Assembly: GCA_011109175.1 (NCBI GenBank)
Contig: RDEW01000022.1
Coordinates: 124,001-188,000 of the forward strand
Source of the DNA: Dicyema japonicum
Taxonomy: Eukaryota > Animalia > Dicyemida
Length of the DNA: 64,000 nucleotides
Direction: 5' to 3'
Shown: positions 5,581 through 54,195 of the stretch, one piece after another
Position numbering within the stretch: position 1 is the stretch's first letter
How the letters are laid out: every line of letters begins with the position of its first letter
The notes under the pieces: model-generated
The model's database searches: none
Seen by the model: only the letters and a program-made list of their open reading frames with translations
What the model was told of the DNA's origin: nothing
Made by a program: the position numbers and the translations under genes

Positions 5581-5750
5581 GAAGCCCGAGATATCAAGTG
5601 AGTAAAGGGATCAAGAGATAAGAGGAAGCCGAAAGTATCAAGTGGGTAAAGGATCAAGAGTATAAGAGGAAGCCGGAGATACCAAGTTGGTAAAAGGATC
5701 AAGAGTATAAGAGGAAGCCGGAGATACCAAGTGGGTAAAGGGATCAAGAG
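5581..5750. repeat. Tandem repeat, ~45-bp unit, about 3.7 copies
   Basis: GGATCAAGAG recurs at 5608, 5651, 5696 and 5741. It lies directly 5' of the degenerate RTE copy. Confidence 0.85.
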
Positions 5751-9330: not shown

Positions 9331-9499
9331 TTATTATATTTTAACGAACTCCAATCATAATAGTCATAAAGTAAGATGATAATTAGTATTCTTGATTAAT
9401 TTATTATAAAAATTATTAAAATAAAATTATTAAATTTAATTATAATTTAATAAAAATATACCAAGATGACAAAGCTGAATGGATCGCATAAGTTGTTGG

Positions 9500-13480: not shown

Positions 13481-13635
13481 ATGCATATTCCTCATGATCT
13501 TCTGTCCTAGAGAGTTTATAAATTCGACCCTCGTAGAAAGAATACCGAAGCTCTGTTTAATAAATCATTCAATTAATTTCAAAAATTTAGAAAACTGTAA
13601 GAGATTAACAAAAACTAATGATGATCATATGAAAT

Positions 13636-14314: not shown

Positions 14315-14590
14315 AACTACCAGCTAGATTAACTCACACTCTCTCAATTTCTCCTCTTCTAGTGTGAAATCTCCTAAATACATTCTTCCAAGGCATTTGA
14401 TCAGATCCACCTCTATCCCCACCGGTCACTGAACAGTCAATCTGAGGAATAACAAAAATATAATATGGAACAATGTAGGATTTGTATAGGGAAATATCTT
14501 ATATTCTTGCATCACCATTATTTTGTGGAGATTTAAAGGTTGCCACCTGATTACTAAAACTAAGTAGAAAAAATAATTGATTTATATAAC

Positions 14591-17075: not shown

Positions 17076-17285
17076 ATAATTCGTTCATCGTGAATTTTAT
17101 CAATTATGTTAAGTATACATGAATCAGATTTTATAGTTACCATTGACGGGGTGACATATTTTTCATGTGGGATCCCATCCACTGCAGTAGAATAGAGAGT
17201 AATACTTTTGAGCGAAGAAAGGTTCTAGGCTTCTCTTGAGTTAGTAAATACCAAAAAAATTAGAAAATAATAGGGGTAGTTACAA

Positions 17286-19367
17286 ATGATGATGCTTGAC
17301 TATGAGCTTAAGCCACTCGTGTACGCTAGCAACTTCCATGGTGCGATTAATGTGCTTACTGTTGATAAAACCGGAACTTATTGTGGTATTGGAGGTCGCA
17401 AAGGTGTAAAAGATATTCATTTCAGTACTTCAGTTTACAAGGTAGACTCTTGTTCAGGCAGTGTCTGTCTAATGCATAAAGTGTTACGACCTTTCACGGA
17501 AGGGGGGTCATTAAGAATATCACTGACATTAGTTGGAACACCAGAATGGTTGTTACAAGTTTACCACTTTAGTCAACGTATTGGCTTCGACGATTAAGGA
17601 AATGTGTTTTACTGGGACATTAACAGGACAGAAACCCGGTTACCTTGTACAGATTTTTTGGTTTATAACGACTAGTGGACAAAAAGACAAATAAGGATGG
17701 ACTAGTCACGCACATAACGTTTGATCCACTCAGCAAACACAATCTATTGATGGCATACCAAAAAGGAGCGGTTAAAATAATGGTTGAAGTATTTGTGACA
17801 TAAAAACAAACGAAACTAGAGATTTTTCCAAGCAGAGCCATCAATCTCTGATGTTAGATTCTCCAAACATTCGAGGTCATCCTTAATTGCCACTGCTCTA
17901 ATTGATGGATCAATCAAAATATGGGATTTAAGGAATTTTAAAAGACACGTGTGTGATTTTCATGCTCACACTGGCAGAATTAATAGCATAGATTGGCATC
18001 CTGACCACAATGTGATTGTTTCGGCAGGAAAGGGACAAAATAACATTTTTTGGACTTATCTCTTATTTTTAAGATTTGGGACCTTGACCACAGCGCCGAA
18101 AAAGTTAACAAGATCAATTCTGGGTCTGGGAATATTATTAAAGTAAAATGGAGACCTGGTTACAGGTAAGACCGTTTTTTTAATCATTGGACTCAGTTCA
18201 CTTTCCTATCTGGGACCTAATGAACCCATATTCTCCATATGCAGTGATTCATTCTGATATGGAAACCGAATTAAGTATGTTGTGGTAACAGCTTTCAGTG
18301 GACATTGCTTGGAGGGGTCGGTCTGGGGAAGAGTTATTCTCTGGTGGAATCAGTAACATGTTGATCAGATTTGTTCTACAAAAGCTCAAAGAATTTCACC
18401 ACCACAATATCGTATGATTTGCATAGACATTGGAATTGATGAAATAATGACTTGTACCAGCTACAGTCTTGAAACGACAACAGATCGAAAAAAACCTGAC
18501 AAGAAGAAACTTTCTCAGGGTAGGTCTAATGTTGAGACTAAGCTTATACTGACTGAGGTACCCGTGTATGATTGATCATAGTTGAAGTCCAATTATTGGT
18601 TTGTCAAAGTCAGCTGAACAACTAAAGTTCTACGGAAGTGACCCTTCTTATTTATGTCAACAACTACTCGCAACCTCAGAAAGGCATTCATTGTAAATAG
18701 ACTTAGATTACACAAATGAAGACTATTAATGAAACAGAGCCAGTGTACACCTACAGCATTCTGAATGTGGAGGATCAGCTTGCGGGTTCTTTTCGCCTTA
18801 TTTTTAGTCATTCACAACAATCTTCAGACTGATTCGAGGTTTGAGGCTCGTAGGGTATTATTGAATCCACAGTCGACACGATTGAAGTCTATGTGGAAAA
18901 GGTACTTCCCTGAATTATTCAAGGGGGACATTTAAATGGCATCCACAATGATTCTCACATTGGGGATGGACTGGTTTGGTGATTTTCTGAATGAGAAGAT
19001 GGTCCACAATTTGCTTATCATGAGATTTGTGATGAAATTCGAACTCTTTGTGGTCTCATCAAAGATCACCAAGTTCGGGGGATTCCCTGAGATTGGGGAA
19101 GAAACTCAGAATAACACAGCTTTTCGATTGAAGTGCATGAATTAGCCAGGCTGTGATGTCATGCTGCAAAATTCAACAAAATGCAACAAATGTCTTGATT
19201 ATTTGGTCATTTGCAGTTTATGGTGGCTTTTGTGTTTATTATATAATAATCCGGTTACTGGGTTGTCCACGTGGTGTCAAATATGTAAACACGGAGGACA
19301 TCTGGATCACATTACACAGTGGTTTGAAACTAACACGTACTGTCCTTCTGGATGTGGGCATGATTGA
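17286..19367 (+). pseudogene. WDR24: GATOR2 subunit WDR24-like gene with short introns, multiple frameshifts and an internal deletion
   Basis: WD40 pieces ITDISWN, GNVFYWDIN, VTHITFDPLSKHNLL, ISDVRFSKH...DGSIKIWDLR...FHAHTGRINSIDWHPD, VKWRPG, IWDLMNPYSPYA and DIAWRG appear in WDR24 order. The C-terminal RING reads GLSTWCQICKHGGHLDHITQWF...CPSGCGH. Several frame breaks cannot be fixed by GT-AG introns. Confidence 0.85.
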
Positions 19368-20970: not shown

Positions 20971-21749
20971 GGAATGTAAATAACCTTCTTATGTAGAGAT
21001 TAACATCATTGTATTTAGAAACTGGTTATGTATTAATCAAAAATTCTCCTTTATAAGGAACCACCTATAGATTCTTAGTCACAATTCCTTGATAATTATT
21101 AAACGATCCACTGTCATTGGCTTCCATCAAACAAAGGAATATCATGTCTACGAAAAAATCCCCATAATGGCCTATTTAAATAGACCTATTGCTTGGAAAA
21201 GAAAAACACTTATTAATCCGACGGTAAAAATGGATATAACTTAATAAGAAGCAAAGTCAATCTCTTTCCGATATATCCGGGCTTATTAAATAAATTAGTT
21301 GTACATCACTTCAAAATAATAAGAAACATTGTGTCGTGCCAGGAGGAATCGTTACCTCACGGGTGACCTGTTTAACGTGAATTGACCTTTGCTGAAAAGT
21401 CTATCTTTCTGATTGGAACATACGACAGTCATATCCTACGTCATTAGATAGCACGTTTATCCGTGTTATTAAATAAAATAACTACATAAATTAATATCCG
21501 TGTTAATAAATAAAATAACTACATAAACCTCCAAATAAAAGAAGCATAAGGACGAATCACATATTTATTAAATTTCAAATTAAGTGACGTTATTTTAAAT
21601 CAGTTCATTCCATCTAATGATTTTACTTAATAAGCAGCCAAATATTTGGTTCTGCTTTGCTCGCTTGGTAAAATATAATGAAGCTTTCATTTCCTCTACG
21701 GATTCCCACTTTCGCATTCCAGTCCCCGGCAATAAACAATAAGTACACG

Positions 21750-21880
21750 TTATTGGTCCAATAGGTTCGGTATTCTATAGTTTAAAACTGCAATTATTTG
21801 CTTGAAAATATTATAAATTAGACTCTCAATTGTAACAATAAAAAATTTTCAAAGTCAAATCTTTCACTTAAACTACCAGT
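21750..21880 (-). pseudogene. Internally deleted fragment of a LAMP-like family gene (also copied at ~33370-33420)
   Basis: ANNCSFKL*NTEPIGPIT and DFENF...YCYN match member A (8.7-8.9 kb). It is followed by a LINE APE scrap (AGDWNAKVG). Confidence 0.45.
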
Positions 21881-22072
21881 ATTTTATGTTTCATTTCAAT
21901 TGCTATGAGATTGATAAATTTTTATTATATTAGAATTAAACTAAAAATTATTTGTTAATAAATATAAATTGTATCATCTTATTATATATATTCCATAACT
22001 GTGGTGTAAATCGACAATAATTATGGACAATATTGCTAAAGGTTTCCAAAATTAAGCAATTCAATAGGGATT

Positions 22073-23074
22073 ATGTTTTATTGTATTTTGATCGGCATTG
22101 CAAAGAATCTCATTGAAGTAATCAAATTACCAAATACACGGGTAACGACGTGGAGCATTAATAATATGGAGTATTCCATATTATTAAGCGGAAATATTAA
22201 TATAGATAATCAAAATGTACAAAAATATGATAATTTTAGGATAAAATTACGAATTTTGATAATTCAGATATTTCATTGAATATCTACCAATTAAATCAAA
22301 ACACTGACCGTATATCCATCATAATGGCAGTTAATAGGTTAAAAATTTACATTCGAATTACAAAAAGTAATAAGAATTATGAATTAGACAAAATGGATAT
22401 TCAAATTGATAGTACTTTGTAAAAATATGTTTAGGTAATGTGTATGCTAAATTGATTACTGATTATTTCAATAATGTATATCATTGCGGTGAACTTCAAA
22501 TTCAATTCGGTGAAGGTAGTATTCTTATAATGAACGAATTAACAATCCAAATATCCAACACAACGAAAATTAAAAATTTTTCTGGAAATGGTTATTTTTA
22601 TAATGAATTTTAGTTACTGAATGCAGATTTACTCAGCCTACTACAAGTAAACACTAATTAGTAATTTATGTCGTCTATTTAGTTATTTTTATTGCAATAT
22701 ATTTTATGCTATTATTTTAGTCGCTTCCACTACCACAACACCAATGGAGGCTACGACTCAAGGTACAATTTTTGTATTATGTGATCATCTAATATTTTTT
22801 GGATATATTTTTTATTTGATTATTTTAGTTCATTCGACTACCACAATACCAACAGAGTCTACGACCCAAGAAGCAATTTTTGTATTAATGGACCCAAATT
22901 TTTTTACACAAATATTTTATGTGACAATTCTATTTAAAACAACTACCACACCACTAACCGTGATTACGACTGAGGGTACAATTTTTATATTAATCAACCC
23001 ATACTATTTTGCACAAATATTTTATTTTCTAGTTAAAACAACAACCACAACACCAACGGAGACTACGATTGAGG
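22073..23074 (+). CDS. LAMP-like domain followed by Thr-rich 42-nt repeat exons (family member C); 3' end cut by a CRE fragment
   Basis: Introns 22217-22239, 22412-22434 and 22591-22613 (all 23 nt, GT-AG) and 22647-22720 give an open frame ending ...NNVYHCGELQIQFGEGSILIMNELTIQISNTTKIKNFSGN|VTECRFTQPTT|IASTTTTPMEATTQ.... No transmembrane exon or stop is found downstream. Confidence 0.7.
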
Positions 23075-23124
23075 GTACAATATTAATAATTATTAAAAAA
23101 TTAGACATTCTCACCTTTTTCTAA

Positions 23125-26300: not shown

Positions 26301-27998
26301 ATTGAAGACAGAGTAAAGTAGATTAACTGAGGGTACGATTGACAAAGAAATTACTAGAAAAGTGTTAACCTCTTATCAAAATCGTTACGACCATTAATAT
26401 GCATTAAATATCAACGTTGACTAAACTAACGTTAAGGTTTGACTGGCCAATAACTAATATCAAATTATTCACTTAAAAACTGAATCAGACTTTTATAGAA
26501 ACATGCTCCAGCTGCTAGGGGACGGTGGACATTCTCGCAAAAGTAGCCATTCCAAAGGCTGTCTAAATCACCGTCGTTACGCGAGTCTCATTTTGCCCGT
26601 CAATCGTGTTTTAACTTTTTTAATGATTGCCTTTGCCAATGTCCCAACCATTGAAGAGACTCGACTGTGAAGTTCCTCAATTGAATTCGAATATCGAATA
26701 TAAATTTAATTTTATTGATTTTGTAATAATCATGCCCATTTAATATGTTTTTGCGATAATTGCTGGATATGAATAAACTATCGATGGTACCATTAATATT
26801 CACAATAGAAAGAGAAGAGAAGGAATGACCAAAATTTCGATTCCCCACAAAAGAAGATTTTCAAAAAACTAAAAAAAATATTAATTGTGGAAACCAAGGT
26901 CATCGTAATTCTTGGACATTACGCAAAACTATATAACAAATATTTTATGGATGACTCCAAAGAAGATATAGTTTGATTAATAAATTCAAATATTGACAAT
27001 GAATAAAACCTGTCTACTAATTTTATAATCTGTTAACAGCGTACTCCACCATTCATTGTCTTCTAGGCTATTAATGAGCATGTTTCTCATTGGAATAGCT
27101 AACAGATATTGATAAACGACTAAAACTGAAATTTTTTAATACAAAAATCCTTTATAAAAATTAACGAGATTATCATTCATAACATTCAAGATTAAATAAC
27201 TAGGTGTTAAGTCTATTGTTTCTCCTACATATCTAAGTTCTCCAAATTGGGTCAGTGGGTGTCGAACCCATCTTCAAAGTCCTGAATTTCTGATGTCTCC
27301 TGAGACCATTAAGACGAGGAAGGAGAGGTTGAGCAAACAAGGCTATCTCCATCTTGATGAGATGAAAACATTAAGCAAACAAGGCCTATGTCCAGATACG
27401 TGACGAGCTCAGTTTTTAGACCAAATGACGACTAGACTAACTGATCAAGATGAAGATGATGAAATTACTATATTTTTATGAATAGAATTCCAACGAGACA
27501 TTCGGAATAGTCATGAGGACTTGTGAGTGAGAGGTGGAAGAGGAAAAGATTCATTTGCCTGAAATTTCGTCGTTTGAATGTTATATAACCTCATACTCGG
27601 ACGAAATTGTGGAGATTTTCTTATCAAATGTTTAAACAATCTTAATAGTTTGTTCAACTGAATTTGTCGGGAAGTCAGCCAATCTGTGTCCACGATGTTA
27701 TCCACTCGGAAAGACGATAAATGATTATCTTTTGAGTCAACTCGAGGGCTGGTTTCCAGTTTATAGCAAAAGGTCCCTTTGGGACATTAGAAGATCAAAG
27801 AGGTCCTCCTCTTAAAGAAGAATGGGGATGGATGTGGAGTCTGAATGCATATTCCTCATGATCTTCTGTCCTAGAGAGTTTATACATTCGACCCTCGTAG
27901 AATGAATACCGATCTCTGTCTAATAAATCATTCAATTAATTTCAAAAATTTAGAAATCTGTAAGAAATTAACAAAAACTAATGATGATCATATGAAAT

Positions 27999-28698
27999 TT
28001 ATAAAATACTTCCTCTCTTGAGCGAATATCTGAGCTACTAACAGAGGGAAAACGAGAGAACTCAGCACACACCTAACCTCTAACATCACCATACTCAACC
28101 TTGAATAGCGAACTTGTGATTTAAGCTTCAGCCAAGAAACAGCCTCGTCAGGAGAAGCATGAGAATCAATGGAATTCTATTCCGGTGTTAATAAACAGCA
28201 AAATCAGCTTTGTTCTTCTATATCTTCACCAAAAAAACACGCCATCAAATTTGCATTACAAACGAGATGTTTGCTCGTTCATCCCCCTAGAATAATCATC
28301 GCAGTATTGATAGCCTTCATGGAAAGCAAGTTAATCTTTCGAACGTCTTTAATAATGTCAAGTTTGAGTCCAGGACGGCCAAAAGAGTGGACAAACAACA
28401 TATTTCCAATATAACCGTCAGTCAAAGCGGACAAATAACCGGGAAATCGTTCTACAATATATGTAAGTCAAATCCCCTTGTTAGTCCAATAAAATATGGA
28501 ACTTTCGTTATTAATCTCCTTTCTTAGTCGCTGACGTAACATGAAAAGAGTCCATTTGTATTCTGAGGGGTTATTACATATGTTTACATATTTCTGATGT
28601 TCCAGTAAGGTTTGGTTAATCATAGGCATAATCCAAGTATTGAATGTACAATAATTGTTATTCGGAATCAAAATGTAACCTTTTACGTGCGAAAACAC
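27999..28698 (-). pseudogene. DHPS: Deoxyhypusine synthase C-terminal half, disrupted (copy 2)
   Basis: ORF 28468-28698 (GYILIPNNNYCTFNTWIMPMINQTLLEHQ...KWT...RLRKEINNESSIFYW) and downstream sequence parallel copy 1. Confidence 0.85.
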
Positions 28699-28727
28699 AA
28701 CTACTAGCTAGATTAACTCAATTAATT

Positions 28728-29660
28728 AAAGTAAGATGGAGACCTGGTTACAGGTAAGACCGTTATTTAATAATTGGAATCAGTTCACTACCCTATCTGG
28801 GACCTAATGAACCCATATTCTCTATATGCAGTGATTCATTCTGATATGAAAACCGAAAAAGTATGTGATGGTAACAGCTTTCAGTGGATATTGCTTGGAG
28901 AAGTCGGTCTGGGAAAGTGTTATTCACTGGTGGACTCAGTATCGTGTTGATCAGATTTGTTCAACAAAAAGCTCAAAGAATTTCACCATCACAATATAGC
29001 AGTAATTGCATCGACATTGGAATTGATAAATTGATGACTTGCACTAGCTACAGTCTTGAAACGACACAAATCGAAAAAAAACCTGACAAGAAGAAACTTT
29101 CTTGGGAATGTCTAAAGTGGAGACTAAGCTAATACAGACTGAGGTACCCCTGTTGATTGATCATAGTTGGAGTCCAATTATTGGTTTGTCAAAGTCTGCA
29201 GAACAACTAAAGTTATACTGAAGTGACCCCTCTTATTTATGTCAACACAACGTAAACGTTGGCAAAAAACTCGGTCGTAATGAAAACGAAGCTTCTTGGT
29301 TGATTTTGAAGAAAGTCATAAATTCACTTAATCTCCGTAATTTCTATATATAGCCTCTAGTACAGATGGAATTCAGCGAATCGTTAATTTACGGTTGTCT
29401 CTGGTAATAATCTTAGAGAAGTGTATAAAATATCAGGAAATATACCAGAGGGGACAGATAACCGACCCCAAACTATTCACTACTCGCAAACACAGAAAGG
29501 TATTCATTGTAAATATACTTAGATTGCACACAGGGAGACTATCAATGAAACAGAGCTAGTGTACACCTACAGTATTCTGAATGAGGAGGATCAGCTTGCG
29601 GGTTGTTTTCGCTTTATTTTCAGTCATTCACAACAATCTTCAGACTGATTCAAGGTTTGT
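28728..29660 (+). pseudogene. WDR24: WDR24 middle fragment (copy 2)
   Basis: Matches 18140-18845 and additionally retains LCQHNVNVGKKLGRNENEASWLILKKV (29237-29330), the WDR24 C-HN-A/V...LGR...W..L motif missing from copy 1. Confidence 0.8.
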
Positions 29661-30269: not shown

Positions 30270-33100
30270 TCAGGTCCTTGTGTAGAACCTATGGCAAAGT
30301 TATGCGAGGTCTTCCACGGAACGAGGTATTCACTTCTGGGCAGAAATAGTTATTCATTGCTATTTTAGCAGGCTTCAATTGGCTCATTCGAAGGATGTGA
30401 CCAAACAGACGTCATCTTGATTCTAGGATATCCAGACTCAATGGTCTTGTATTACATACTTTGTATAGATTCTTGTTTGTAATTTTTTTCGGCCAGTTGA
30501 TGCCAAGCAACAGTCGGAGTTGCTTACGATGGAAGGCATCTAGTTTGTCCATTACCGCTTCTGAGACACCCCAGGTTGCAGCGTTGTACATTAGGACTGG
30601 TTTCACGAAGGCATTATATAGTCTCACACGTAATTGTGTGCTAATTTGTTTACGATGATTCCAGACTACTCCCATTTTTCTAAAGGCCGCGACGGCCAAC
30701 ATTTTTTTGTTAGTAATATCCTCAGCGTCTCCGAGCAACGACCCCAATTTTTTACAGTATCTCCATTTTTCATCAGTTCGGGTTAGTTCACGGCGTATGG
30801 TAGTTGTCTCCGTCTTTTTCGTATTGATTTTGATGAACCATTTTTCTAAAACATCTGGCATCCTTGTCCGTATATAGTTTAATGTTTTCTCGTCGCTGGA
30901 TATATAGTCGAAATCATCTGCATAAAACACTTCAGTTTGAGGTAGATCGCCAATTAATAGTCTGAAGTCTCTGAGTGCCGCCTCCAGATATGTCACAAAA
31001 AATACCGGTGACAAGGAATCTCCGTGCGGTACCCGAACGTTGTCTCGAATAGGACAGACTCCAAATTTCCAAAACGTACACTTAGCTGCGTTGTTCCAAG
31101 TAATAGACGAATCATTCTGACACCGTCCTCGTCAACCAACTTCTCCAAGATATCCAAAAGTCTCCCTCTGTTTATAGAGTCAAAGGCTTTGGACATGTCC
31201 ATGCCAAGGATGCCAATAGCCCCCTTGTACTTTTGATGTGTTGCACAAAGCCATCGATGTCCCCAGACCACATCAGCTGTAGATCTCCTTGACCTGAATC
31301 CGCTTTGACCGTGAGAGAGAAAGTTCTCGATGTCAGATCCAATCCTGTTCAGCACTATAAGTGATAGTGTCTTGCGTAGAGTCGTCAATAGTACGATGGG
31401 TCTTAAATTCGTTAAGGGGCCTTTAGCTTTGCCCGGTTTTTGTAGTGCAATTAGTGTGCCATTACCCAAATCCAGTGGTGAGTTGTATTTGAATGTTTTG
31501 TTGTATATCTCAGTTAATAGTTCAGAGATCTCGGTCGGTGCATATTTGAGAAGTTCAGCATTTATGTTGTCAGGACCAGCAGCTCTATTGTTGTTCAGTT
31601 TGTCCAGGGCTTTTTTTGTTTCCAGAATCGTTATCGGAAGATTTAGTTCTCGTGCTTCACCATCGAATTGTTTGATTATTTCCCCGTGGTTTTGATTGAA
31701 GGCCTGCTGATAATGGCTGGATATGGTCGATAGAATTTCATATTTGTTTAACATAGTCTTTCCAAACTGGTCATGTATTGTGATTTTTGATAACTGCGTG
31801 TCTCTATGTAGTAGGTGAATAGCCTTGAACATCTGCGCTCCGTTTTTGAGTCTTTCTACTTCTTTAGCCATTCCAGCAAATTTATTTTCCTTTATTTCCC
31901 TCGTTCTTTTCTTTATTTTATACAGAGTTTGGTTCCGCATGGCTCTTAGAGTGTGTTCCTTTGCCTGGTCCTGGCAGGTTTCGACCTGTAAACGTAGGTT
32001 CCTCTGCAATTTGGATAGTTCTTTAAGTTTGTGGTCATAGTATCCGTTAAAATGGTTCGGTTTTACTCCGACTGTTGAATGGGCCGCGCACTTTATTGCA
32101 TCGATGGTGTCTTGCCAGAGCTCCCCAGGCATTTTTTCTTTATTCCACTGTCTGATCTTTTCTCTCAATGTATTTTGATAGCTTTCCCGAGTCGGTCCTA
32201 CCATGCAGAGTTGCTCTACTGCGAACCTCCCCTCAGATATCCTCATGCCAGCCGCTTTGGAAACCCCAAAATATCGTTCGAAAAGGAAACGTGCCACAAC
32301 TAATCTGTGATCACTATCTACTAGTGTCCCACTGTAGCTCCGAGAATCTGTTAGCATTGCCTTGTAGGCTTGTTTGCAGATAATGTAATCTATTTGGTTA
32401 TATATAGGCTTGATAGTCCCAGATTTGTCCTTTCGGTAGCAGCTCCATGTCGTCTTATGTCTTGATGAGTACCTGAAAGCAGTTTTGTATAGAAATAGTT
32501 TGAATGTATTGCAAAATTCGATTCTCCTGAATGGTTCATGATCCTTCTTTTATGGCTTCCCATGAATTCTTCGTGACTACTCACACATCCTGCCTTTGCG
32601 TTCCAATCTCCGGCGATGTATGTCATGAACGATGTTTCCAAAGATGCATATAGTTGCGACAGGGAGGAATAGAAGTCGTCTAGTTCGTCTCCATTGATTG
32701 ATACTCTCACCGAAGTTGGTGCATATACATTAATAATGGAGATTATGGAATTGTTCCTTTCACCGTATTTTAATTGTAAAACACATATTCTATCGCTCAC
32801 CTCCACGTCTTGTGGATTCGATTGTTCAGTTCTTTTTGTATTGCAAATCCCATGCCGTAGTGTGGGCAATTCGAAGGGTGCAGAATCAGGCGGAAATCAT
32901 TGTTGATTTCATCTAGTCCGCCTTTTACTTTCGTTTCCTGTAAGCACGCCACGGTTACCTTGTACTATCCAAGATCCACATAAATTTCTTCTTTTAATAT
33001 CCGACTTTATTCCTCTTACATTGGACGAGCTAATAGTGAAAGATCCCGAAGAAAAGCACGAAAAAGACATGTGTGCAATAGAGCCACGTCACCAGCTCAA
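30270..33100 (-). mobile_element. RTE-clade LINE, near full length with frameshifts
   Basis: APE motifs ACLQETKVK, INVYAPT, AGDWNAK, SDHRLV. RT motifs NNRAAGPDNI, RPIVLLTTLRK, QSGFRSRRST, DMSKAFDSINR, FYADDFD, KPVLMYNAATW. Confidence 0.92.
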
Positions 33101-33579
33101 CCTACAAAGATGGCCAATATCAGTGTTATTAAATAAAATAACTACATAAACCTCCAAATAATAAGAAGCATAAGGACGAATCATATATTTATTAAATTTC
33201 AAATCAAGTGACGTTATTTTAAATCAGTGCATTCCATCTAATGATTTTACTTGATAAGCAGCCAAATATTTGGTACTGTTTTGCTCGCTTGGTAAAATAT
33301 AATGAAGCTTTCATTTCTTCTACGGATTCCCACTTTCGCATTCCAGTCCCCGGCAAAAAACCATAAGTACACGTTATTGGTCCAAAAGGTTCGGTATTCA
33401 ATAGTTTAAAACTGCAAAAAATTTTTATTATATTAGAATTAAAATTAAAAATTATTTGTTAATAAATATAAATTGTATCATCTTATATATATATATATTC
33501 CATAACTGTGGTGTAAATCGACAATAATAATGTACAAAATTGCTAAAGGTTTACAAAATTAAACAATTCAATAGGGATT

Positions 33580-33964
33580 ATGTTTTATTGTGTTTTTGTC
33601 GGCTTTGCAAAGAATCTCATTGAAGTAATCAAATTATCAAATACACGGGTAACGACGTGGAGCATTAATAATATTAAGTATTCCATATTATTAAGTGGAA
33701 ATATTAATATAGATAATCAAAATGTACAAATATATAATAATTTTAGGATAAAATTACGAATTTTGATAATTCAGATATTTCATTGAATATCAACCAATTA
33801 AATCAAAACACTGACCGTTTATCCATCCTAATGGCAGTTAATAGGTTAAAAATTTACATTCGAATTACAAAAAGTAACATGAATTATGAATTAGACAAAA
33901 TGGATATTCAAATTGATAGTACTTTGTAAAAATATGTTTATGTAATGTGTATGCTAAATTGATT
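33580..33964 (+). pseudogene. 5' part of LAMP-like gene C, duplicated and truncated
   Basis: Near copy of 22073-22460. The second intron acceptor is mutated (TTAG to TTAT) and the copy is cut off by a DHPS fragment. Confidence 0.7.
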
Positions 33965-34105: not shown

Positions 34106-35114
34106 AGAAAAAGGTGAGAATGGCTAATTGTTGTTTGCCGTTAAGAATATGAATTAACATCGAGTAAGTCAAATACTTTTTTTAAACATAAGCTTTAATA
34201 ATAATTACACTAAAATAAATGTTACAGTACTTGACCTCTTTTTTCTTTTTTTAAATTTATTAAGCTAATTAAAGACAAAAATTAACAGTTAGAAATTACT
34301 GGATTATCTCACAATCGAGAACGCATTTCACCTGAAACTTTGAAAAGAAATGTGCTAATCAGAGAGCTCCTTTCTCTTCTATAATTTTTAATTAGACAGT
34401 TCCTTAGTGATTACGAATTTTTTTCAGATTTAGAAAACTTGCGGTGTTCCCAAGCAAGATAAGCTAACTCAATTTAGAAAACAATAATTTTAGAATTTTA
34501 AAGTAGTTCGCATTTTTATATGTCGTGTTAATTACTGAGTATTACTAAGAAAGTTTGAGAGTTATTTAATAATTTTTCAAAGGGATTTTCTTTTCAAGTT
34601 TCTATAAATATCGGAATGAGTGGATACAATTATGATATGGAATATCAGAAGCGACCACATTCTACACGGATTGGTTATTAGCATGAGGTCAAATATTATG
34701 GAAAATGTTTTCATGAAGTTCAATATATCTCGTGTGGATTAGGTGCACTATCGATGCTTCGTATTTCTTTCACGACTCCAATAAATATCTATGTTTATTA
34801 TAGAAGTTTCTGTCGTAAGACAAAAGAATTTAAATTTTGAGTATTTTATTGTGAGTTCTCGTTGTGTATATATTAATAAAATGATGATTTTTAAAGATCC
34901 AGTCATCATCAGAGTATAATTTAATATTTAATAAATAATGGTTGTAAATGAAATCCGAAAATTAATTCGCCAACTAAAACCCCATGTTAATTTTAATTAA
35001 ATTAGTATCATATGTCCCGTTAAACGAGCATTCCCAATGATGTTGCAAATCGATGATTTTCAGACGATGTCATGCGTGCAAGATTATTCATCGGAAATTG
35101 TGTAGCGGTCAAGT

Positions 35115-35775
35115 CTTCAAATATAAATAATTAATATGATTTTAGGAATAGGTTAAACAATATCAATATTGTACCCTGAGTCGTACTCTCCGTTGATGTT
35201 GTGGTAGTTGTTTTAACTAGAATAGTAACATAATATATATATGCAAAAAATATTAGTTGATTAAAAAAAATAAAAATAAAGTTGATTACATAATACAAAA
35301 ATTGTACTTTGAGTGGTAGCTTCCGTTGGTGTTGTGGTAGTGGAAGCGACTAAAATAATAGCATAAAATATATTGTAATAAAAATAACTAAATAAGCGTC
35401 ATAAATTACTAATTAGTGTTTACTTGTAGTAGGCTGAGTAAATCTGCATTCAGTAACTAAAATTCATAATAAAAATAACCATCTCCAGAAAAATTTTTAA
35501 TTTTCGTTGTGTTGGATATTTGGATTGTTAATTCGTTCATTATAAGAATACTACCTTCACCGAATTGAATTTGAAGTTCACCGCAATAATATACATTATT
35601 GAAATAATCAGTAATCAATTTAGCATACACATTACCTAAACATATTTTTTACAAAGTACTATCAATTTGAATATCCATTTTGTCTAATTCATAATTCTTA
35701 TTACTTTTTGTAACTCGAATGTAAATTTTTAACCTATTAACTGCCATTATGATGGATATACGGTCAGTGTTTTGA
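35115..35775 (-). CDS. Inverted paralog of LAMP-like/mucin gene C (member D); 5' end lost at N 35776
   Basis: Reverse complement of ~22293-23075. Exons 35424-35456 (33 nt), 35308-35349 and 35175-35216 (42 nt each) have intact GT-AG sites. Degenerate second-domain-like sequence continues below 35115. Confidence 0.7.
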
Positions 35776-35776
35776 N

Positions 35777-37214
35777 AACAGTCATTTTACCTTCAATCGT
35801 CGACGGATTTGTAGAAGCTAGGGAAATTAACAGTCATTATACCTTCAATCGTCGACGGATTTGTAGAAGCTAGGGAAATGAACAGTCATTTTACCTTCAA
35901 TCGTCGACGGATTTGTAGAAGCTAGGGAAATGAACAGTCATTTTACCTTCAATCGTCGACGGATTTGTAGAAGCTAGGGAAATGAACAGTCATTTTACCT
36001 TCAATCGTCGACGGATTTGTAGAAGCTAGGGAAATGAACAGTCATTTTACCTTCAATCGTCGACGGATTTGTAGAAGCTAGGGAAATTAACAGTCATTAT
36101 ACCTGATGTTGTTGACTGAGTAGTAGAAGCTAGAGAAATGAAAAGTCATTATACCATCAGTAGATGAAGTGATAAAAGCTGACGTTAATAAAAAGTCATT
36201 TTACCTTCAATCGTCGACGGATTTGTAGAAGCTAGGGAAATGAACAGTCATTATACCTGATGTTGTTGACTGAGTAGTAGAAGCTAGGAAAATGAACAGT
36301 CATTATACATGATGTTGTTGACTGAGTAGTAGAAGCTAGGGAAATGAAAAGTAATTATACGTGATGTTGTTGACTGAGTAGTAGAAGCTAGGAAAATGAA
36401 CAGTCATTTTACCTGATGTTGTCGACTGAATAGTGGAATCTAGGGAAATGAAAAGTCATTATACCATCAGTAGATGAAGTGATAAAAGCTGACGTTAATA
36501 AAAAGTCATTTTACCTGCAATCGTCGACGGTTTAGTAGAAGCTAGGGAAATGAACAGTTTTTATACCTGCTGTCGTCGACTGAGTAGTAGTATTATCTTG
36601 GAAAATGACTAATCATCATACATTCAGGCAATGGATAAGTAAATTCTAAAGTTAATGAAAAATCATTATACTTCTTAGTGTCGTCTGAAGATATGAAGCT
36701 ATGGAATTTAACAGTTTTTTATACCTTCTTTCGTCGACGGAGTAGTAGAAGCTTTGAATATGACTAGTCATTATACCTTTAGTCAATGAACTGATAGAGG
36801 CTATCGTTAATGAACAGTCACTATACCTTCAGCCAATGGAGTGGTAGTAGCTGACGTTAATGAAAAGTCATAATACCTGTAGTTGTCGACGGAGTAGTAG
36901 AAGCTAGGATAATGACTAGTCATTATACTCTTAGTCAATGAACTGGTATAGGCTATCGTTAATGAACAGTCATTATACCTTCAATCAATGGAGTGGTAGC
37001 AGCTGACGTTAATGAAAAGTCATAATACCTGTTGTTGTCGACGGAGTAGTAGAAGCTAGGGATGGGACTAGTCATCATACCTGCTGTTGTCGACTGAGTA
37101 GTAGAATCTAGGGAAGTGACTAGTCATCATACCTGTTGTCGTCGACGGAGTAGTAGAATCTAGAGAATTGACTAGTCATTATACCTTCAATAAATGAAGT
37201 AGTATCTTCATTTT
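35777..37214. repeat. Minisatellite with 50-55-bp units (dominant 52 bp)
   Basis: The unit AACAGTCATTTTACCTTCAATCGTCGACGGATTTGTAGAAGCTAGGGAAATG repeats almost perfectly from 35777 to ~36100 and diverges toward 37214. Confidence 0.97.
35791..37214 (-). CDS. Mucin-like Ser/Thr/Pro-rich segment encoded by 28 symmetric micro-exons (partial gene)
   Basis: Every unit parses as GT...AG intron (25-26 nt) plus exon of 24, 27 or 30 nt, all phase 1-1. The spliced 741 nt are stop-free: ENEDTTSFIE-DSTTPSTTT-DSTTQSTTA-ASTTPSTTT...-(ASTNPSTIE)x6. Start and stop codons were not identified. Confidence 0.82.
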
Positions 37215-38599
37215 CTATTAATTAAAATTTACATTAATACCTTTTCCTTAACTTAATCCAATCTCTATTAATCAAAATTTACAATTTACTGGAAAATATT
37301 TCGAAGAATATCAAAAGACTGACTAATATCATTCAACATTTCCGTCTGTGTTCGATTATAAATATTCATCAAAGAATTTGACCTTATTTATTGTGAGTCG
37401 AATGAATTCCATACACATAAAGGGATATTAGCTTATATCTCGATTAATTTCTTCTCTTACTAATCTCACTTCACGTAATGGAAACGTTCTTTTTTATCTC
37501 TGATGATATCAATAAAAATTCTTTGTCTAAAAATAAATAACAATAAAAACTAACTTCACAATCATATTTGTTCACAAAAGAGACTCCTGACAAACACCAC
37601 AGATTTCAACATTACCCTATAAGACGTCCGAATTATACTTGGAAAAACTCGTTACTTTTATAGAGGATATCCCTGGGGACTTGGAATTAAATTTTTATTT
37701 TATTACATCAAATATATATGAACGAAGTTTAATTAACTTTGGAATTTCATATATACACAGATTGACTTTCCCTATTTTTTTGTTAGGTTTGTAATGTACA
37801 TCAACTGGATAACTCTCTGGGTACTCTTTGAATTATTTTAACTCAAGCCAATTTTTAATTTGAAACTTTTTTTATATGATATTTTGACTATTAACCACAT
37901 TTTTGAAATATCTTAATAATGTCAAGGATCATATATATTATGAATGTGCTATCTATGGATTTGATCTTTTATAGACATATGAATTCGTGATCCGCTTTCA
38001 ATTGGCACAAAAAATAAGTAACTAAAACCAATTAATTGTTTTTTAAACTCAAACGATTGAATAATCAATCAGTATAATTTATCTTATTTGTTATTCCCAA
38101 TTGCTCATCAGTGACAGCTCACAGTCGCCTTCGATTACTTGGATCCACTTATCCCTATGGTGACGGCATTGAACGCTAATTTGGGACTATGAATGCCCCA
38201 GGCTGACTGGTGGAACTTAATAAAACCTATTATGGGTAATTCTGGATTTATTCAAAACTATGAGAAACCTCGAAAGTATTCAGTAGGGCGAATTTTGTCA
38301 TTATCTCAAAAATTCATATGTTCTTTAAATTTGTTTGAAACTTGCACAAAAAATTTAATAACATTCACAAGTTCGTGTTAGTTAACAATTTTTTTAAAAA
38401 AATATTGCTTCAGATTTTTTTCCATCTACTAACTCGATAGATCATGATTGCATCCAACAAGACAACTCAAATGTACTTCTTTATAAATCAATAGTTAAGT
38501 CAAAAAATCAAAATTAGATTTTCGGTCAATAATGTAAAATAATTTATTGATTTTCTTATTGATTTTTTTGAGTTTTTGAATTAGATAATAACTTGTCAT

Positions 38600-40545
38600 C
38601 GAGATACGTTCTCGGAACCAACCAGTCTCTCGCGGATCCTTGGTCACAACTTGAATCATGGAGCCGATCTTACGAACCAACTCATCTGCTTGGGGCCAAG
38701 GATTCCTGACGTTTCCACTGCGAATGGAACAAAAAGATACTCCTCCGAAATTCTCTGGTACTCTTTCGTTCCTCCTGCTTTGAAGCATGTCCTGGGTCTG
38801 AAGCAGAAGTAACCAAATTAGACGGGGAATAAGTATCAACACACGTCGCGTCCCAGATCAGGTTTCGTCCGTTAGCGAATGGAAAAGTCGTCATCCCATC
38901 AGGGTGTTTTCTATCGTTTCGGGAAAGACCAGCAGGTTCTAACAGGCAATTGTGTCCAGCAGAGGCAAGGGAATTCTTTAATGTCATGTTAAGACAGGAG
39001 TGCCTGGGGAAACGACCCGCACTCATCTTGCATGACAAGGGATGATAACCAAAAGGATCGATCCAACGTCCACAGCGGCATTTTCTTTCGGCACACAATT
39101 TAAGACCAAGACGAAGCGAGGTAGCTATCCTCACAGCTTCATCATCCAACAGGTTTCAATTTCGGCAGATGGATAAGCGTTCATCCAGGCCCCCGTCGAG
39201 TGACAACTAGCTGTTTTGAGGCAGGCAAGCCTTCTTACATCTTCCGTCTTTTCAAGGGACTCTTTCTTCTTTTCGAAGACACAAAACAAATAGGACTTTT
39301 GCTTATCACAATTGGCCGGAGCATTCAGGTACAAATTCATCCATTCATCCCAGGCTCCCGACGGCGTCAGCGGTACGTTTAGTCTGGAAGTAGAGTGAAG
39401 GACCGTATCCACTAAACGCCTTGACGAGCCGAACGAAGAAATAGGCGCCCAAAGCAACGTCCGAAGGAAGAGAAAGACCCAAACCACCGCAGGCTACAGG
39501 GAGTGAGGCCTGTAACCATCCGAAATCATCAAAACGAACATTAAGAATGGACCCCATCGTCGACCGATATCCATATCAATTAACGATAGAAGGTCTTTTT
39601 CGGCGTAGCATGGGGATCCCCGTAGAATAAAAAGGAGTCTTGGGAGAATGAGACAATTCTTCAGCATAAAAAAGGCGACATGACGGTCCAAAAAACTCAT
39701 CCTGTCGGCATACTGACGTAAATTAGTCCTCTTGCCTTCCAATAACTCCCTCACCCGGTTTACCAAAATCCCACACCCAAGGAAGTCGAGAGAATCAATA
39801 TGAGTCTCCCTAACCCCTGGGATGATTTCGCAGAGTTTTCTATGAAAAAGGTAGAATGAATCGGAACTCAAATTCAGATTAATTGCTTCGCACTTTTCAT
39901 TGTTAAATTCCAGACCGATTTTTCCACACAAACTTCTGATCGACGCAACTTTGGAGAGAATATCATCGGGACTTCCACCGAGAATACAATCGTCCAGATA
40001 CCAGACGTTCAGTGGAGTGCAACGGTCCTGGGCAATATGGTCGATAGACAAGGAAAATAGAAGAGGACCGAGTGGGTCCCCCTGTTGAACTCCGGATCCG
40101 GACGAAATAATTCCACTGCCAAAAGCAAGAGGGATGGATCCGAATACGCGAGATATACAAAGGGATAAATCTGAGGAATCCTCCTTCTACAAGTATCAAG
40201 GACGGTGTCCCTTCTGACTGAATTGAAGCATTCCGGAGGTCCAATTTGAATAAAACTCTGTCCTCAACATTAAATTCAGCTGATTGTGACGCAAATTCTC
40301 TCACTGCGTGGATCCCAGCTTCACAGCCGCCATTGATTCCGACACCAAGCTGCGAAGGACAAAATTCGGCTGAAATTCGGGAGATAACAAAACGACAAGC
40401 CATTTTTGCGGATAAACGTCGAAATACGTTTCCAATTGCAATGGGGCAAATACCACCATCTTTCTCTCCAAGGCCCGTTAGATTCGCCGAAAAGAGGAGA
40501 TTCCGACCAAAATCGGAAACGTCATGGCCATTCAGATGCCTTAAA
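38600..40545 (-). mobile_element. CRE-clade non-LTR retrotransposon (RT + Zn-knuckle + restriction-like endonuclease), 5'-truncated and frameshifted
   Basis: PIAIGNVFRRLSAKMAC, QLGVGINGGCEAGIHAVR, QQGDPLGPLLFSL, WYLDD, GGLGL, CRCG...HPLSC...RH..LN, HPDG...LIWDATCVDT. Confidence 0.88.
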
Positions 40546-41039
40546 TTTAATTATAATTAATTGATTTAATTTATAAAATGATAATAAAAAAAAAAAACTT
40601 GTCATCAACTGTCATGTCTCGTTCAATCAATAAGGTCATTGAAAAGATTAGACTGTTATTAGCAAATATCTTGGTGAATTTTATATCAACTCACGAATTT
40701 TCTATCAAAAGCTTTTTATGATTATTTTGTCTAAGAAACATTTCAAACTAAAAGTTCATTTTTATCACTATTTCAAAGGTTTTACTGTAAAAATATCTGT
40801 TTTTTTCATTCCATCTACTCACTCTGGGATCAATAGGTCACTAATCCTTATTTGAATATGATTTCTTTGCATTAGTGGAACATTAAAGTTTAAAAACTTA
40901 TTTGATTTATTGGATATCGTTTTCGAGTTAGGGGACAACTCACCTGTAGGCAAGTATCTTTACAGTACAAGACGTAGCTAACATATTCAAAATGTATCAT
41001 AATTTTGATACTGACATATTGAATTTTGAATGTTAGCGT

Positions 41040-41099
41040 GGTGTCATGTGGCTCATCAGAAATGGTGTCACCCATTCCAAAATGGAACGAAAAGAGCCA
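41040..41099 (+). ncRNA. Candidate HDV-like ribozyme fold at the element 5' end
   Basis: GGTGTC-ATG-TGGCTC-ATC-AGAAAT-GGT-GTCACC-CA-TTCC-AAAAT-GGAA-CGAAAA-GAGCCA follows the P1/J1-2/P2/P3/P4/J4-2/P2 order. P1 has a mismatch and P1.1 is not evident. Confidence 0.35.
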
Positions 41100-41173
41100 A
41101 CAGCTTCTCCCCACCGTCCGGTGGTCCTCACATCTCCTGTGTCTTCGACCCTGTCTGGTGTCCCCATTTATCC

Positions 41174-41220
41174 AGACTTTTGATTCTTCTATGTGGGACG
41201 TCGAAACCAATCCTGGTCCA
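41174..41220 (+). other. 2A-like (StopGo) peptide RLLILLC(G)DVETNPGP, broken by a 1-nt deletion
   Basis: AGA CTT TTG ATT CTT CTA TGT GG GAC GTC GAA ACC AAT CCT GGT CCA lies directly ahead of the APE domain. Confidence 0.8.
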
Positions 41221-44200
41221 TGGAGAAGTTTTACAATTATACAACTGAATACGAATGGGATCAGGAAGAAAATCTTGAACTCCGGGCACTCCTCCGCGAA
41301 AATGAGGCTGATCTCGCTTTTATACAGGAGTCCAAGCTATCTCCCTCCATTCCAACACTCTCTTTTCCCGGATACACAGTGATCCGTAAAGATTGTCAGG
41401 GAGGACGCGGAGGAGGACTACTTACTATTATAAAGAACGATGTTCCTTTTATGGATACAACTCAACGAACCTCAGAGCTTCTTGACTCCGACAAGACTTT
41501 GGAGCAGATTACTGTCAAATCGAGTTATTCCCGTCCTTTTGGATACATTTGGCTAATTTAGATATTCCTCCACAAGGATCCTGTACGTCATCTTACACCC
41601 CTGATTTATCACGCATTTCAACATTGAAAAATCTACTGTTATGTGGGGATCTTAATGCACGACATCCATTTTGGCTCATTTTCCCAATCCTCTGATAACC
41701 GATGATAACTCATTGCAAATTATCTTCATGACCTGATTATACTGAACAACCCTAACTCACATACGAGGACCCCATTAAGGATGACTGAAAGCTGCACATC
41801 CCCGACTTACACTATGCTCACCTTCTCTGGCTGGACTCATTTCCTGGAACGTCTTTTACGGCTTCTCCAGTGACCATAATTCAATCCTTCTAAAACTGAG
41901 AGGTCTTCGACGATACAGGAGACGGCCGACGGAATCAAAAAGATTCAAGGATTATACGATGGTTGACTGGTCTGGTTTCAGTAACTTGTGGATAAATTCT
42001 TGGCCCGAAGATTATCTTCCCCAATACGCTCTATTGATGAGGCCGCAGATATTATCAGCGCTGCCATTCGGAAAGCTGACCATATTTTTATTCCTATATC
42101 GTCATACAAGAAGTTTATTCCTACCCTCAGCTCTTATACAATAAGTCTTATAAAACAAAGAGACCGGCTGAAGAGATGCCATCTGTTGGACATGAAGTCT
42201 TTGACAGCCTCAACAAGGATCTCAGAGCATAAGAAAGGATCTGTCAGAGCATAAAAAAACAAGGACAAGAGATGGCAGCATCTAGTTAACCACCTCGAAT
42301 AAAAGGATCTGTCAGAGCATAAAAGAACACAAGGACAAGAGATTGCAGCATCTAGTTAACCACCTCGACAGGAAAAGTACATCCCGACATTTCTGGAAAA
42401 CTCTTAAACAAGTCAAGTCGGAACTGGATGATGCAGACGGAACCGGAAAGTCTTCTCCTGAACACTTATACCACCTACATCCTAACACCCTTATGAAACA
42501 TTACGCTGGAATTAGCTTCAAACCATTCTCGAAACACCTGGACATTAAGGTGCGTGCCCATAAACCGAAGAAGGAACCTTACCACGAACTATTCACAGAT
42601 GACCAAGTCTTGGATGTGATCACCAGATTAAAGAGCTCACGGGCGTGCGGGCCTGACAAAGTATCTTCTATTCACCTAAAACACCTAAGCCACTACGCAA
42701 TTGGCTACCTCACGCATATATACAACCTGTCCATTAACTATAATATTACTTCTCAAGATTTGGAAGAATTCTATTATCAGACCGATATTGAAGGCTGGAA
42801 AATCAGAGACAGAACCTGCATCCTACAGGCCTATTTCCGTTACCAGCACACTATCAAAAATTATGGAGAAACTTGTATTATCAGTCATTATTCCGTATCT
42901 TCCGCGTCCTATATTTCAACATGGTTTCCTCCGCGGTAGGTCCATCGCTACATACTTGGCAACTTTATCGCAGTTCATTGCCGACGGTTTTAACACCCAT
43001 CCTCCGCCTCACAAACGCACAATCTTGGTTTCTATTGACATCAACAAAGCCTTTGACACTGTTTCGAGGAAAATCTGGTTGGAACAATATTTTCTACTAA
43101 TATTCGTCCGAATGTGAAATTATGGCTGGCCAACTTTTTGTCTGGAAGACGTGGAAGAGTAGTCAGTGGTGATCTCAGATCTAGATCACGATTACTACCG
43201 AACGGGGTACCCCAGGGGTCTCCACTTTCACCAATTCTATTCAACCTATTCCTACACGACCTACCTAATGATGGAGACGAAGATTCCCTGCTATTATCCT
43301 ACGCAGACGATGTAGTCATTGCAATACGGAACCGCTTGACGCAAGTCGCATCCCTTAAAACTCAGACAAAATTGAACACTCTCCACGATTGGATTGTTGG
43401 CAATCGACTAACGATTTCTTCAACCAAGTCTATCTGTTCCACATTCACGTCGGACCGTCGTTCCAAGGATGAACCGAGTATTTTTATTGGTCCCGCTCGG
43501 ATTCCAGTGACAAGGTCCCCCACTGTCCTTGGAGTCATGTACGACAGCCTTCTCAAATTCAACTCCCACGCAACAGACATGATCACCAGGGGCCTCAAGA
43601 AAGTTAACGTTATACGCGCCCTTGTTCAGAGGACCACTAGGAACATGGACTTTTCCGTTTCTACCATTTACCAACAAACAATCGCGCCTGCCATTGAGTA
43701 TGCTTCCGTTGCATGGAGATTCGGGCTATCGGAGTCTATGGTCCAAAGAATCAACTCGATATACCGGAAAACAATCAGTATGCTTTCCCCACGTAATGGA
43801 TCAACAGTCGACCCACTACTCATGGAAGCTAAGATCCGTAGTCGTGGCTCCGGATTTCTTCGCGTCTGTGAGGAAGATGGAAATCCGCTTCGCCTGATCC
43901 TTTCCATGGCAAGAGAAAACCGATTGGATAAGAAATTCCCTCTCCGATCGGATTCCTCTGCAAGACCGAGAGAAGGCTCTTCCGGAAAGTAGCGGGGACG
44001 ATGGAAGATCACAGACGTCGAATGGCACAATTGATTGCGAGGACTGAGATCACCTAACTGTTTGACTCTTTTGTCTTTCTTTCTCGGTGTTCCCGGGGTT
44101 ATTAAATAAATAAATATTTTAAAATCAATAAAGTCAATTTTTTATGTAAAAATTTCTGATTTGTAAAATCAAAAAATAGCCCTAGTTATCAGTCTACCTT

Positions 44201-52755: not shown

Positions 52756-53947
52756 ATTTTGTTCTTTAGTGAATGCACAATATCTGCTTTAAATATTTAA
52801 AAACATTTTCAGGAGATTATTGTTTGACTACATTAATGTGCATTGTGAAAACATGTTCCATATTTCATACTCAAAATATCTCGCTGTTATCTTCTTCAGA
52901 GCATTATAAAAATCTCTCAATTTCCATATTCCAATTAAATAATGATTTATTGGGCTGTTTTCGTTATCATGTTTTCTAGTGTTTATTTTCGAAGGCCTTT
53001 TCAAAGCAATTTCGTATTTCTGATTTATTTATTCCCAGGCCACAAGTAAACAAGTTGCATTATCTAAGTCTTTATTGGAATGCCCATTTGCAATTTTGCA
53101 GACAATAAGTTTTAACGTTGACTGGGAAATTTTTGCACATCAGAGAACGAAAAACTACATAAACTTCTGTATTTAATTGGTACCCATCTACCCTATTTGG
53201 CGTAGAGCAACCTTTAATAAGATACCCTTTTAGTCGACGATGCCAACTTCCTTTTCCAGTCGACTTCCATCAGAGATGCCATTCTTCTTACAAATAAATG
53301 CATATTTATGCAGATCTGATTGTATTTCCTTACATATTCTATTTTTTATCATTTTGATTTAACTTCCTGGTCATACACCTTTAAATTTTTTAAGATAAAT
53401 TTAAAAATTGTCACACTAATTTCGCCCATTTGGGGTTTATTACTAAAGAAAATTTCCCCCAAATTGATGTTTTGTCCAAAAAGAGGTTTTCTTCACAGTT
53501 TAAGTTTTTCCAAAACGAGGTCGGACTGTACTACAATCGAAAGTGGTTGTGTCTTTTAAAGGGTCGAACTAACAACATTGACGATTGACTAAATCTGCTC
53601 GTTAGTACACCTTTAGGAGAGACTGTGCACCTTTTAGGGCTTCGAACAGACCATAGCTTCGACCCTCTTCTGGCATCTTATGGCAAAATCGTCGATACGA
53701 AAAAATCTATTCTTCCAGTTCAGTCAGAAACCAGAAAATCCACTAAGTTTGTCCGTGTCCTGACCACATAGTTTATACGAGGCTGAGTTATGATATACTT
53801 GTTGCATTAGTAAATTAGTTTGTTGGATAATATATGCGAGTAAACCTCCTAGCAGTTGCTTTAATCTCCGTAAATCATTAGGGAACAAGAAAGGTATACC
53901 CTAGGATAAAGAGGAAATAGTCTGCAACATCGTTTGCTCCTCAAAAG

Positions 53948-54195
53948 CAACGAGAGAGTCTATATCCGCAGTGTCAAGGATTCATTTTTACTCTCAAAAA
54001 TATCGAATAGTATATTATTTATTTATTTAATAACCCCGAAAAGGGAACACCAAGAAAGAAGGAGTAAACCAACGAGAGAGTCTATATCCGCAGTGTCAAG
54101 GATTCATTTTTACTCTCAAAAATATCGAATAGTATATTATTTATTTATTTAATAACCCCGAAAAGGGAACACCAAGAAAGAAGGAGTAAACCAAC
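53948..54195. repeat. 122-bp tandem duplication covering a LINE 3' end plus flank
   Basis: CAACGAGAGAGTCTATATCCGCAG occurs at 53948 and 54070. Confidence 0.85.

Follow-up and report, generated by a model that had tools for sequence, protein, structure and literature searches.

A tandem array of micro-exon-like units with 25-26-nt GTA..AG pieces in Dicyema japonicum, probably the repeat region of a secreted mucin-like gene family

Repeat-per-exon genes with tandem-duplicated cassettes are known from fibrillar collagen with its 54-bp exons, from Chironomus Balbiani ring 3 and from spider flagelliform silk, where the introns are homogenised together with the exons. Schistosome micro-exon genes (MEGs) consist mostly of short symmetric exons, with lengths that are multiples of three (3n), placed behind a signal-peptide exon; they encode secreted parasite proteins, and exon skipping is documented for them. 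In SmPoMuc of Schistosoma mansoni, each 9-residue mucin repeat is encoded by a 27-bp exon, and exon and adjoining intron recur in tandem in as many as about 20 copies; SmPoMuc shows concerted evolution, forms a multi-gene family that includes pseudogenes, and has a unit of about 1 kb bounded by microsatellites (PMC2576457). Here we describe an array on the minus strand of a 64,000-nt window (the whole stretch of DNA that was analysed, in whose numbering all positions are given) of contig RDEW01000022.1 of Dicyema japonicum (assembly GCA_011109175.1), a parasite of the octopus kidney, in which intron-like pieces of 25-26 nt alternate with exon-like pieces of 24, 27 or 30 nt. We consider it probable that this array is the repeat region of a multi-copy, lineage-specific family of secreted mucin-like genes in a genome of tiny introns; for micro-exon arrays of this kind in dicyemids we found no description in the literature.

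Tandem Repeats Finder (TRF) reports a 52-nt period in 27.4 copies at 35777-37191 together with higher-order periods of 152 and 310 nt, and the minus strand was parsed mechanically into a piece running from GTA to AG and a piece of 3n length. Between 35791 and 37214 this gives 28 consecutive units of 50-55 bp. Nineteen intron-like pieces are 25 nt long and nine 26 nt; of the exon-like pieces, 19 measure 27 nt, seven 24 nt and two 30 nt; and in the array parse GTA stands in 29 of 29 donors and AG in 28 of 28 acceptors. The array and its truncated end are read as follows:

35791-37214, minus strand: 28 putative micro-exons (24, 27 or 30 nt, all phase 1-1) alternating with 27 putative introns of 25-26 nt; from the parse, TRF, alignment and statistics
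35777-35790, minus strand: first 14 nt of a putative 29th intron, starting with GTA and truncated by the gap; from the sequence

The units agree with those of a preliminary description of the locus, which had reported 28 minus-strand units, each with a GT..AG piece of 25-26 nt and an exon of 24, 27 or 30 nt. Joined, the exon-like pieces amount to 741 nt, or 246 codons (247 had been counted before), in a single open frame, while the other two spliced frames are closed, one by four stops and the other by many. That the spliced frame is free of stops and rich in Ser, Thr and Pro, as had also been claimed, is borne out by its composition (54% Ser + Thr and 70% Ser + Thr + Pro + Ala over 249 residues) and by repeat peptides such as DSTTPSTTT, ASTTQSTTS, ASTNPSTIE and similar ones. 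Left unspliced, the array holds only open reading frames (ORFs) of 33-44 aa, in agreement with the earlier remark that no unspliced ORF is called there. The 28 units comprise 23 distinct sequences, and units 20-28 are nearly identical, which indicates a presumably recent amplification. The anatomy of the unit and its tandem and higher-order duplication are thereby plain from the DNA.

Like SmPoMuc, the array would have one exon per repeat and is a tandem series of exon plus intron; 19 of its 28 exons measure 27 nt, the rest 24 or 30 nt. The SmPoMuc unit is about 1 kb, whereas the present one, at 50-55 bp, falls in the minisatellite size class, and expression and splicing were shown for SmPoMuc, whereas the array is known from DNA alone. 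A protein search with the spliced N-terminus, against a collection without D. japonicum ORFs, found no sequence similarity between the two. SmPoMuc also has conserved C-terminal exons, which in the array gene would fall beyond the gap at its 3' end. The array is an analogue of SmPoMuc, not a member of it. Its putative exons resemble those of the schistosome MEGs in being 24-30 nt long, 3n and placed behind a signal-like exon (described below); the exons of MEGs, in contrast, do not form a tandem series of a single cassette and are separated by ordinary-length introns, and there is no homology. The units of collagen, Balbiani ring 3 and silk span hundreds to thousands of bases, whereas here intron and exon measure about 25 nt each.

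The introns have a closer counterpart in the same organism. D. japonicum has introns of 20-27 nt with a 5' signal GTa and a 3' signal AG, and outside the myxozoans it is the only animal with such introns (PMC13644364). The array introns, all 25-26 nt, lie inside this class, and the ultra-short introns described for D. japonicum and myxobolid myxozoans share their length, GTA and AG; those introns, however, lie in ordinary genes, and that work reports no series of some 30 exons of 27 nt (PMC13644364). Since 20-27-nt GTa..AG introns are normal in D. japonicum, the array would be a tandem duplication of one exon plus intron of this genome. The preliminary description had set the locus apart from schistosome genes with ordinary-length introns; the 25-26-nt length holds, but it is unremarkable, since it is the norm in this genome (PMC13644364). 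The mean exon of D. japonicum measures 198 bp (PMC6736024).

An exhaustive search of both strands for chains of GT..AG pieces of 20-32 nt, 3n exons of 15-45 nt and an open frame yielded a full chain in a single phase of the minus strand; the plus strand gave none. The consensus unit has a single GT..AG pairing of usable length, so that the burden of multiple testing is low, and the intron consensus was matched 16 times, against 0 in shuffles. With the 52-nt consensus as reference, units 2-28 (27 units) were aligned, an event being a column state common to a fixed set of units. Seventy substitution events and four indel events were found, and none of the 70 substitutions strikes a GT or AG dinucleotide. 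Seven of the 25 aligned intron columns are invariant, five of them being G1, T2, A3 and the terminal A and G, and outside these five positions 18 of 20 intron columns vary. The indels in the exon part are of -3 and +3 nt, and both in the intron part are of +1 nt. When substitutions and indels were re-placed at random in the same unit sets, the full parse survived in one of 1500 trials; with substitutions alone it survived in 5 of 1500 (p about 0.003-0.004) and with indels alone in 256 of 1500, the signal arising mainly from splice dinucleotides that stay untouched. These results show that the splice dinucleotides are maintained across the array.

An alternative on which these counts bear is that the array is a minisatellite without coding function that goes with a mobile element or other dispersed repeat, for instance with the 3' portion of the adjacent non-LTR (long terminal repeat) retrotransposon or with another multi-copy element. 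Its GT..AG period, 3n length and open frame would then stem from one founder unit and owe their survival to recent amplification and homogenisation rather than to selection for splicing. The near-identity of units 20-28 is in line with such a history, but it would also have to explain how 70 substitution events over 23 distinct units left every GT and AG intact, why the 3n indels are confined to the exon part, and why the sole open frame is mucin-like. We regard this origin as unlikely, though it has to be weighed again below with the evidence from codons and flanks.

The GTA..AG grammar continues beyond the array. It extends upstream of 37214 through two more introns and reaches an in-frame ATG at 37332, and the upstream end of the proposed gene can be laid out as follows:

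37215-37240, minus strand: putative intron 2, 26 nt, GTATTA..AATAG; from the sequence and the parse
37241-37264, minus strand: putative exon 2, 24 nt, with an in-frame TAA at 37250-37248; from the sequence
37265-37289, minus strand: putative intron 1, 25 nt, GTAAAT..AATAG; matches the array introns in length class and in its GTA..AG ends
37290-37332, minus strand: proposed exon 1, 43 nt, ATG then MILVSLLIFFEIFS, ending in phase 1; in the open frame of the array
37355-37364, minus strand: TATA-like TATTTATAAT, 23-32 nt upstream of the proposed ATG; read from the sequence
37333-38100, minus strand: upstream flank, multi-copy, about 15-50 times the single-copy depth; from a summed depth of 11,600-38,300 against about 750 in the array core

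An in-frame TGA lies immediately upstream of the proposed ATG. Residues 2-10 of exon 1 (ILVSLLIFF after the ATG) have a mean Kyte-Doolittle hydropathy of 3.3, and by hydropathy only the product of this exon looks like a signal peptide; the TATA-like TATTTATAAT is a possible core promoter. In the gene so proposed, each of the 29 exons that follow exon 1 measures 24-30 nt and is 3n, and thus counts as a symmetric exon of at most 36 nt. That an in-frame ATG and a hydrophobic start are joined to the array by two introns of the array's own type is a further point against a non-coding minisatellite. A start at the ATG within the first array exon (37211) was considered and rejected, as a TGA is met in the fifth exon.

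The locus was then compared with sequencing reads from four public runs of one sample, dated 2019, and one tiny run, whose contigs were set against 34900-38100; contig depths are quoted for run X1, and relatives were counted at 90% identity or more. The diverged core of the array, 36487-37100, is matched without mismatch by contigs from the four runs, and since it is reproduced exactly in these contigs, the array DNA is real. An assembly artefact or a chance pattern might be invoked because the array runs up to a scaffold gap and the assembly has collapsed its terminal units: by depth, the terminal unit type amounts to about 38 unit-equivalents genome-wide, against about 7-9 assembled here. 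With the core exact in the contigs of four runs, no consensus match in shuffles against 16 observed and a single parse survival in 1500 trials, such an origin is hardly credible.

In run X1 the single-copy array core has a depth of about 750, and the two-to-three-copy block below the gap one of 1,360-2,370, while the flank at 37254-38100 and the first array units reach 11,600-41,000, which corresponds to about 15-50 copies. The flank and the first units thus belong to a multi-copy family. One set of relatives differs from the window at 37214, 37218, 37219 and 37249. The relatives changed at 37218 and 37219 still keep the terminal AG of intron 2, and with the variant at 37249 a sense codon replaces the TAA of exon 2 in most of the depth at this site. 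Another subfamily of relatives diverges at 37252, where exon 2 would be 27 nt long and then be followed by GTA. The base variants listed for relatives in exon 1 are confined to codon 11, and no indel is listed in this exon; among the indels listed for relatives none lies in 37185-37332, while at least eight lie in 650 nt of the upstream flank. This retention of splice and frame features by the paralogs is not what a non-coding repeat would lead one to expect. Given the stop in exon 2 and the assembly gap, the assembled copy may be a dead or dying member of the family.

The flank at 37333-38100 may be a promoter or 5' region common to the members of a gene family, or it may come from a mobile element. 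Its relatives in the reads show many variants and small indels, and no second copy of it was found within the 64-kb window. At 37988-38005, 18 nt are absent from related read copies, whose contigs jump from 37987 to about 38006, from which it follows that the flank family has indel variants extending past 38100. A hammerhead ribozyme at a CTGATGAG motif (38104-38111, minus strand), in a G+C-richer patch of the multi-copy flank, was considered with the SmPoMuc ribozyme in mind and rejected, as Rfam gave no match at the gathering score or with E up to 1. The protein search with the spliced N-terminus (X at the stop) returned nothing and, its collection containing no D. japonicum ORFs, is uninformative; exact look-ups of two window ORFs and a search with an unspliced array ORF were equally blank, in collections without this organism.

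Taking these observations together, we propose the following arrangement. Exon 1, of 43 nt, would supply the start codon and a signal-peptide-like N-terminus, and would be followed by at least 29 micro-exons of 24-30 nt, all in phase 1, each encoding one repeat of 8-10 residues. The pieces between them would be ordinary 25-26-nt GTA..AG introns, presumably removed singly, and the product would be a secreted stalk protein, presumably O-glycosylated. The cassette of exon plus intron may have multiplied by repeated tandem duplication or unequal crossing-over, in single units and in blocks of three and six; because all exons are 3n and in phase 1-1, the length of the stalk could change without a break of the frame. 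Transcription, splicing, secretion and glycosylation are steps that we infer from the DNA.

Several observations weigh against this proposal and have to be set beside it. In the assembled copy the frame is broken by the TAA 19 codons after the ATG, and beyond 35776 the assembly lacks the remainder of the array and the 3' part of the gene, so that neither a stop codon nor a poly(A) signal nor a C-terminal domain is visible. The randomisation assumes a uniform placement of mutations and one event per column state. The 42 substitution events in exons split 14/14/14 over the three codon positions, and a synonymous or third-position excess, looked for in every frame, was not found, the synonymous share equalling the chance expectation. 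The open frame by itself is kept in 33% of random mutation placements. Contigs of the four runs follow the genome sequence straight through the putative introns, with no 25-nt skips, and the runs are taken to be DNA; a search for RNA runs with the locus found only these DNA-like runs, though its first query, of 4 kb, may have hidden a small RNA. Finally, a remnant of a non-LTR reverse transcriptase (RT) lies directly 5' of the multi-copy flank on the same strand, so that a mobile-element origin of the flank is possible. This remnant is:

38498-40550, minus strand: non-LTR RT remnant, degenerate and frameshifted, directly upstream of the array on the same strand; from QQGDPLGPLLF and YLDD motifs seen by eye

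The minisatellite explanation draws on these points: the absent codon-position bias and the non-significance of the open frame by itself, a multi-copy flank directly downstream of an RT remnant on the same strand, reads that behave as DNA at the locus, and the presence elsewhere in the window of another long interspersed nuclear element (LINE) followed by a tandem repeat (53944-54195). The RT remnant, however, is degenerate, has no relative within the window and ends its ORF about 1.2 kb from the proposed ATG; for its ORFs at 38498-40403, Pfam and the PDB gave no match. The open frame alone was rejected as proof of coding on account of the 33% of randomisations that keep it. The absent codon bias fits a low-complexity mucin stalk, in which composition alone matters, and non-coding DNA equally, and events per site differ little between exon columns (1.56) and intron columns (1.12). 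As the codon statistics are uninformative, the case for the secreted mucin-like gene family rests on the splice signals, on the lengths and places of the indels and on the gene context.

The preliminary description had gone further and proposed combinatorial splicing: by skipping different sets of its symmetric micro-exons, one gene would yield many surface-antigen or length variants. The exons are indeed all 3n and in phase 1-1, and all 378 forward exon joins stay in frame, with no junction codon turned into a stop; variants made by splicing are, moreover, known from SmPoMuc and the schistosome micro-exon genes (PMC2576457). To skip one exon, however, would mean removing 77 nt, against introns that are concentrated at 20-27 nt (PMC13644364). 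Length variants arise more simply when cassettes are added or lost in the DNA, and the higher-order repeats and near-identical terminal units show that process; the assembled copy also carries a premature stop. Tiny introns are, furthermore, expected to be recognised intron by intron, with errors that are mostly retention rather than skipping. We therefore think combinatorial skipping quite improbable. Of the earlier interpretation, the micro-exon and micro-intron gene with a Ser/Thr/Pro stalk is what the 70 events sparing GT and AG, the 3n indels and the link to an ATG support best, while its combinatorial part is left unsupported.

For the published D. japonicum annotation, which lists 5,012 genes, any sequence with more than 30 repeats was masked ahead of transcript mapping (PMC6736024). 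Such masking would hide a family of this kind, and if the proposal is true, the count of 5,012 leaves out genes for what are possibly the parasite's chief surface or secreted glycoproteins. If the array is spliced, the mRNA would carry a junction roughly every 27 nt along at least 29 consecutive exons, and splicing would discard half of the primary transcript, 25 nt at a time. To our knowledge, this would be the densest exon-intron packing known in an animal. It would then be a test case for a spliceosome acting on adjacent tiny introns with exons below its footprint, for the placement of exon-junction marks and for the evolution of tandem repeats under spliceability; an array that stays unspliced would be an ordinary minisatellite of little interest. 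Larger still, and in our view a long shot, would be a hidden, extensive family of spliced-minisatellite mucins in dicyemids, in which each repeat of 8-10 residues would have its own 24-30-nt exon between 25-nt introns, and DNA cassette turnover and in-frame RNA exon choice together would produce a highly variable glycoprotein coat at the host interface. If so, the masking of repeats would have kept an entire class of genes out of the published set.

On the other side of the array lies the scaffold join:

35776, no strand: single N, a true scaffold join; contigs ending at 35775 continue elsewhere

The contigs that end at 35775 continue into sequence that matches the region before a paralogous copy at 22296, and not into the array. 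The block 35775-35148 (minus strand) is an inverted copy of 22296-23100, with the first 500 nt 96-99% identical, and appears to be part of a separate Thr-rich exon-plus-intron repeat gene. Its Thr-rich exons at 35373-35148 were considered as the 3' end of the array gene and rejected, as they belong to this inverted copy and the reads diverge at the gap. At 22687-23100 (plus strand) and 35373-35148 (minus strand), putative Thr-rich exons of about 42 nt (VASTTTTPMEATTQ and similar) alternate with GTACAA..TAG pieces of 63-66 nt at a period of 105-108 nt, and the two inverted copies hold four and two cassettes. The GTACAA..TAG pieces are putative introns; at 22651-23121 the unspliced frame is also open, over 157 codons, because the period of 105-108 nt is a multiple of three, and read unspliced the putative introns give hydrophobic stretches. 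Both single-N joins of the window, 23404 and 35776, adjoin Thr-rich repeat genes.

The window as a whole has a G+C content of 35.8% and at least five non-LTR retrotransposon remnants; for the genome as published in 2019, 36.7% G+C, 49% repeats and many LINE copies were reported (PMC6736024). Five remnants have endonuclease and reverse-transcriptase domains, and most of the five are frameshifted; besides the one next to the array, which escapes Pfam, they are:

9443-12166, minus strand: non-LTR remnant
30415-32896, minus strand: non-LTR remnant
41023-43989, plus strand: non-LTR remnant
54202-56362, minus strand: non-LTR remnant

At 53944-54195 a 122-nt unit is repeated 2.1 times with 99% identity, directly 3' of the RT ORF 54199-55449 (minus strand), which implies that retrotransposons of this genome can end in tandem repeats. 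Another tandem repeat, of 45 nt in 3.8 copies with 88% identity, lies at 5581-5750; its unit contains GTAAAG, and the repeat is read by open frames on either strand.

Several stretches of 0.5-0.9 kb in the window have been copied by recent segmental duplication. They comprise 21539-22425 and 33163-33932 (direct, 95-96%), 22296-22790 and 35775-35280 (inverted, 96-99%), 13551-14336 and 27914-28720, and 18262-18843 and 28848-29659. Finally, at about 17280-19364 on the plus strand there is a WDR24-like (GATOR2) WD40 gene with a zinc-finger-like C-terminal end, whose best PDB match is WDR24 (E 7e-19); it has two plausible introns of about 35 and 39 nt, but was set aside as an in-window control for introns, one expected junction near 18030-18075 having no clean GT..AG.

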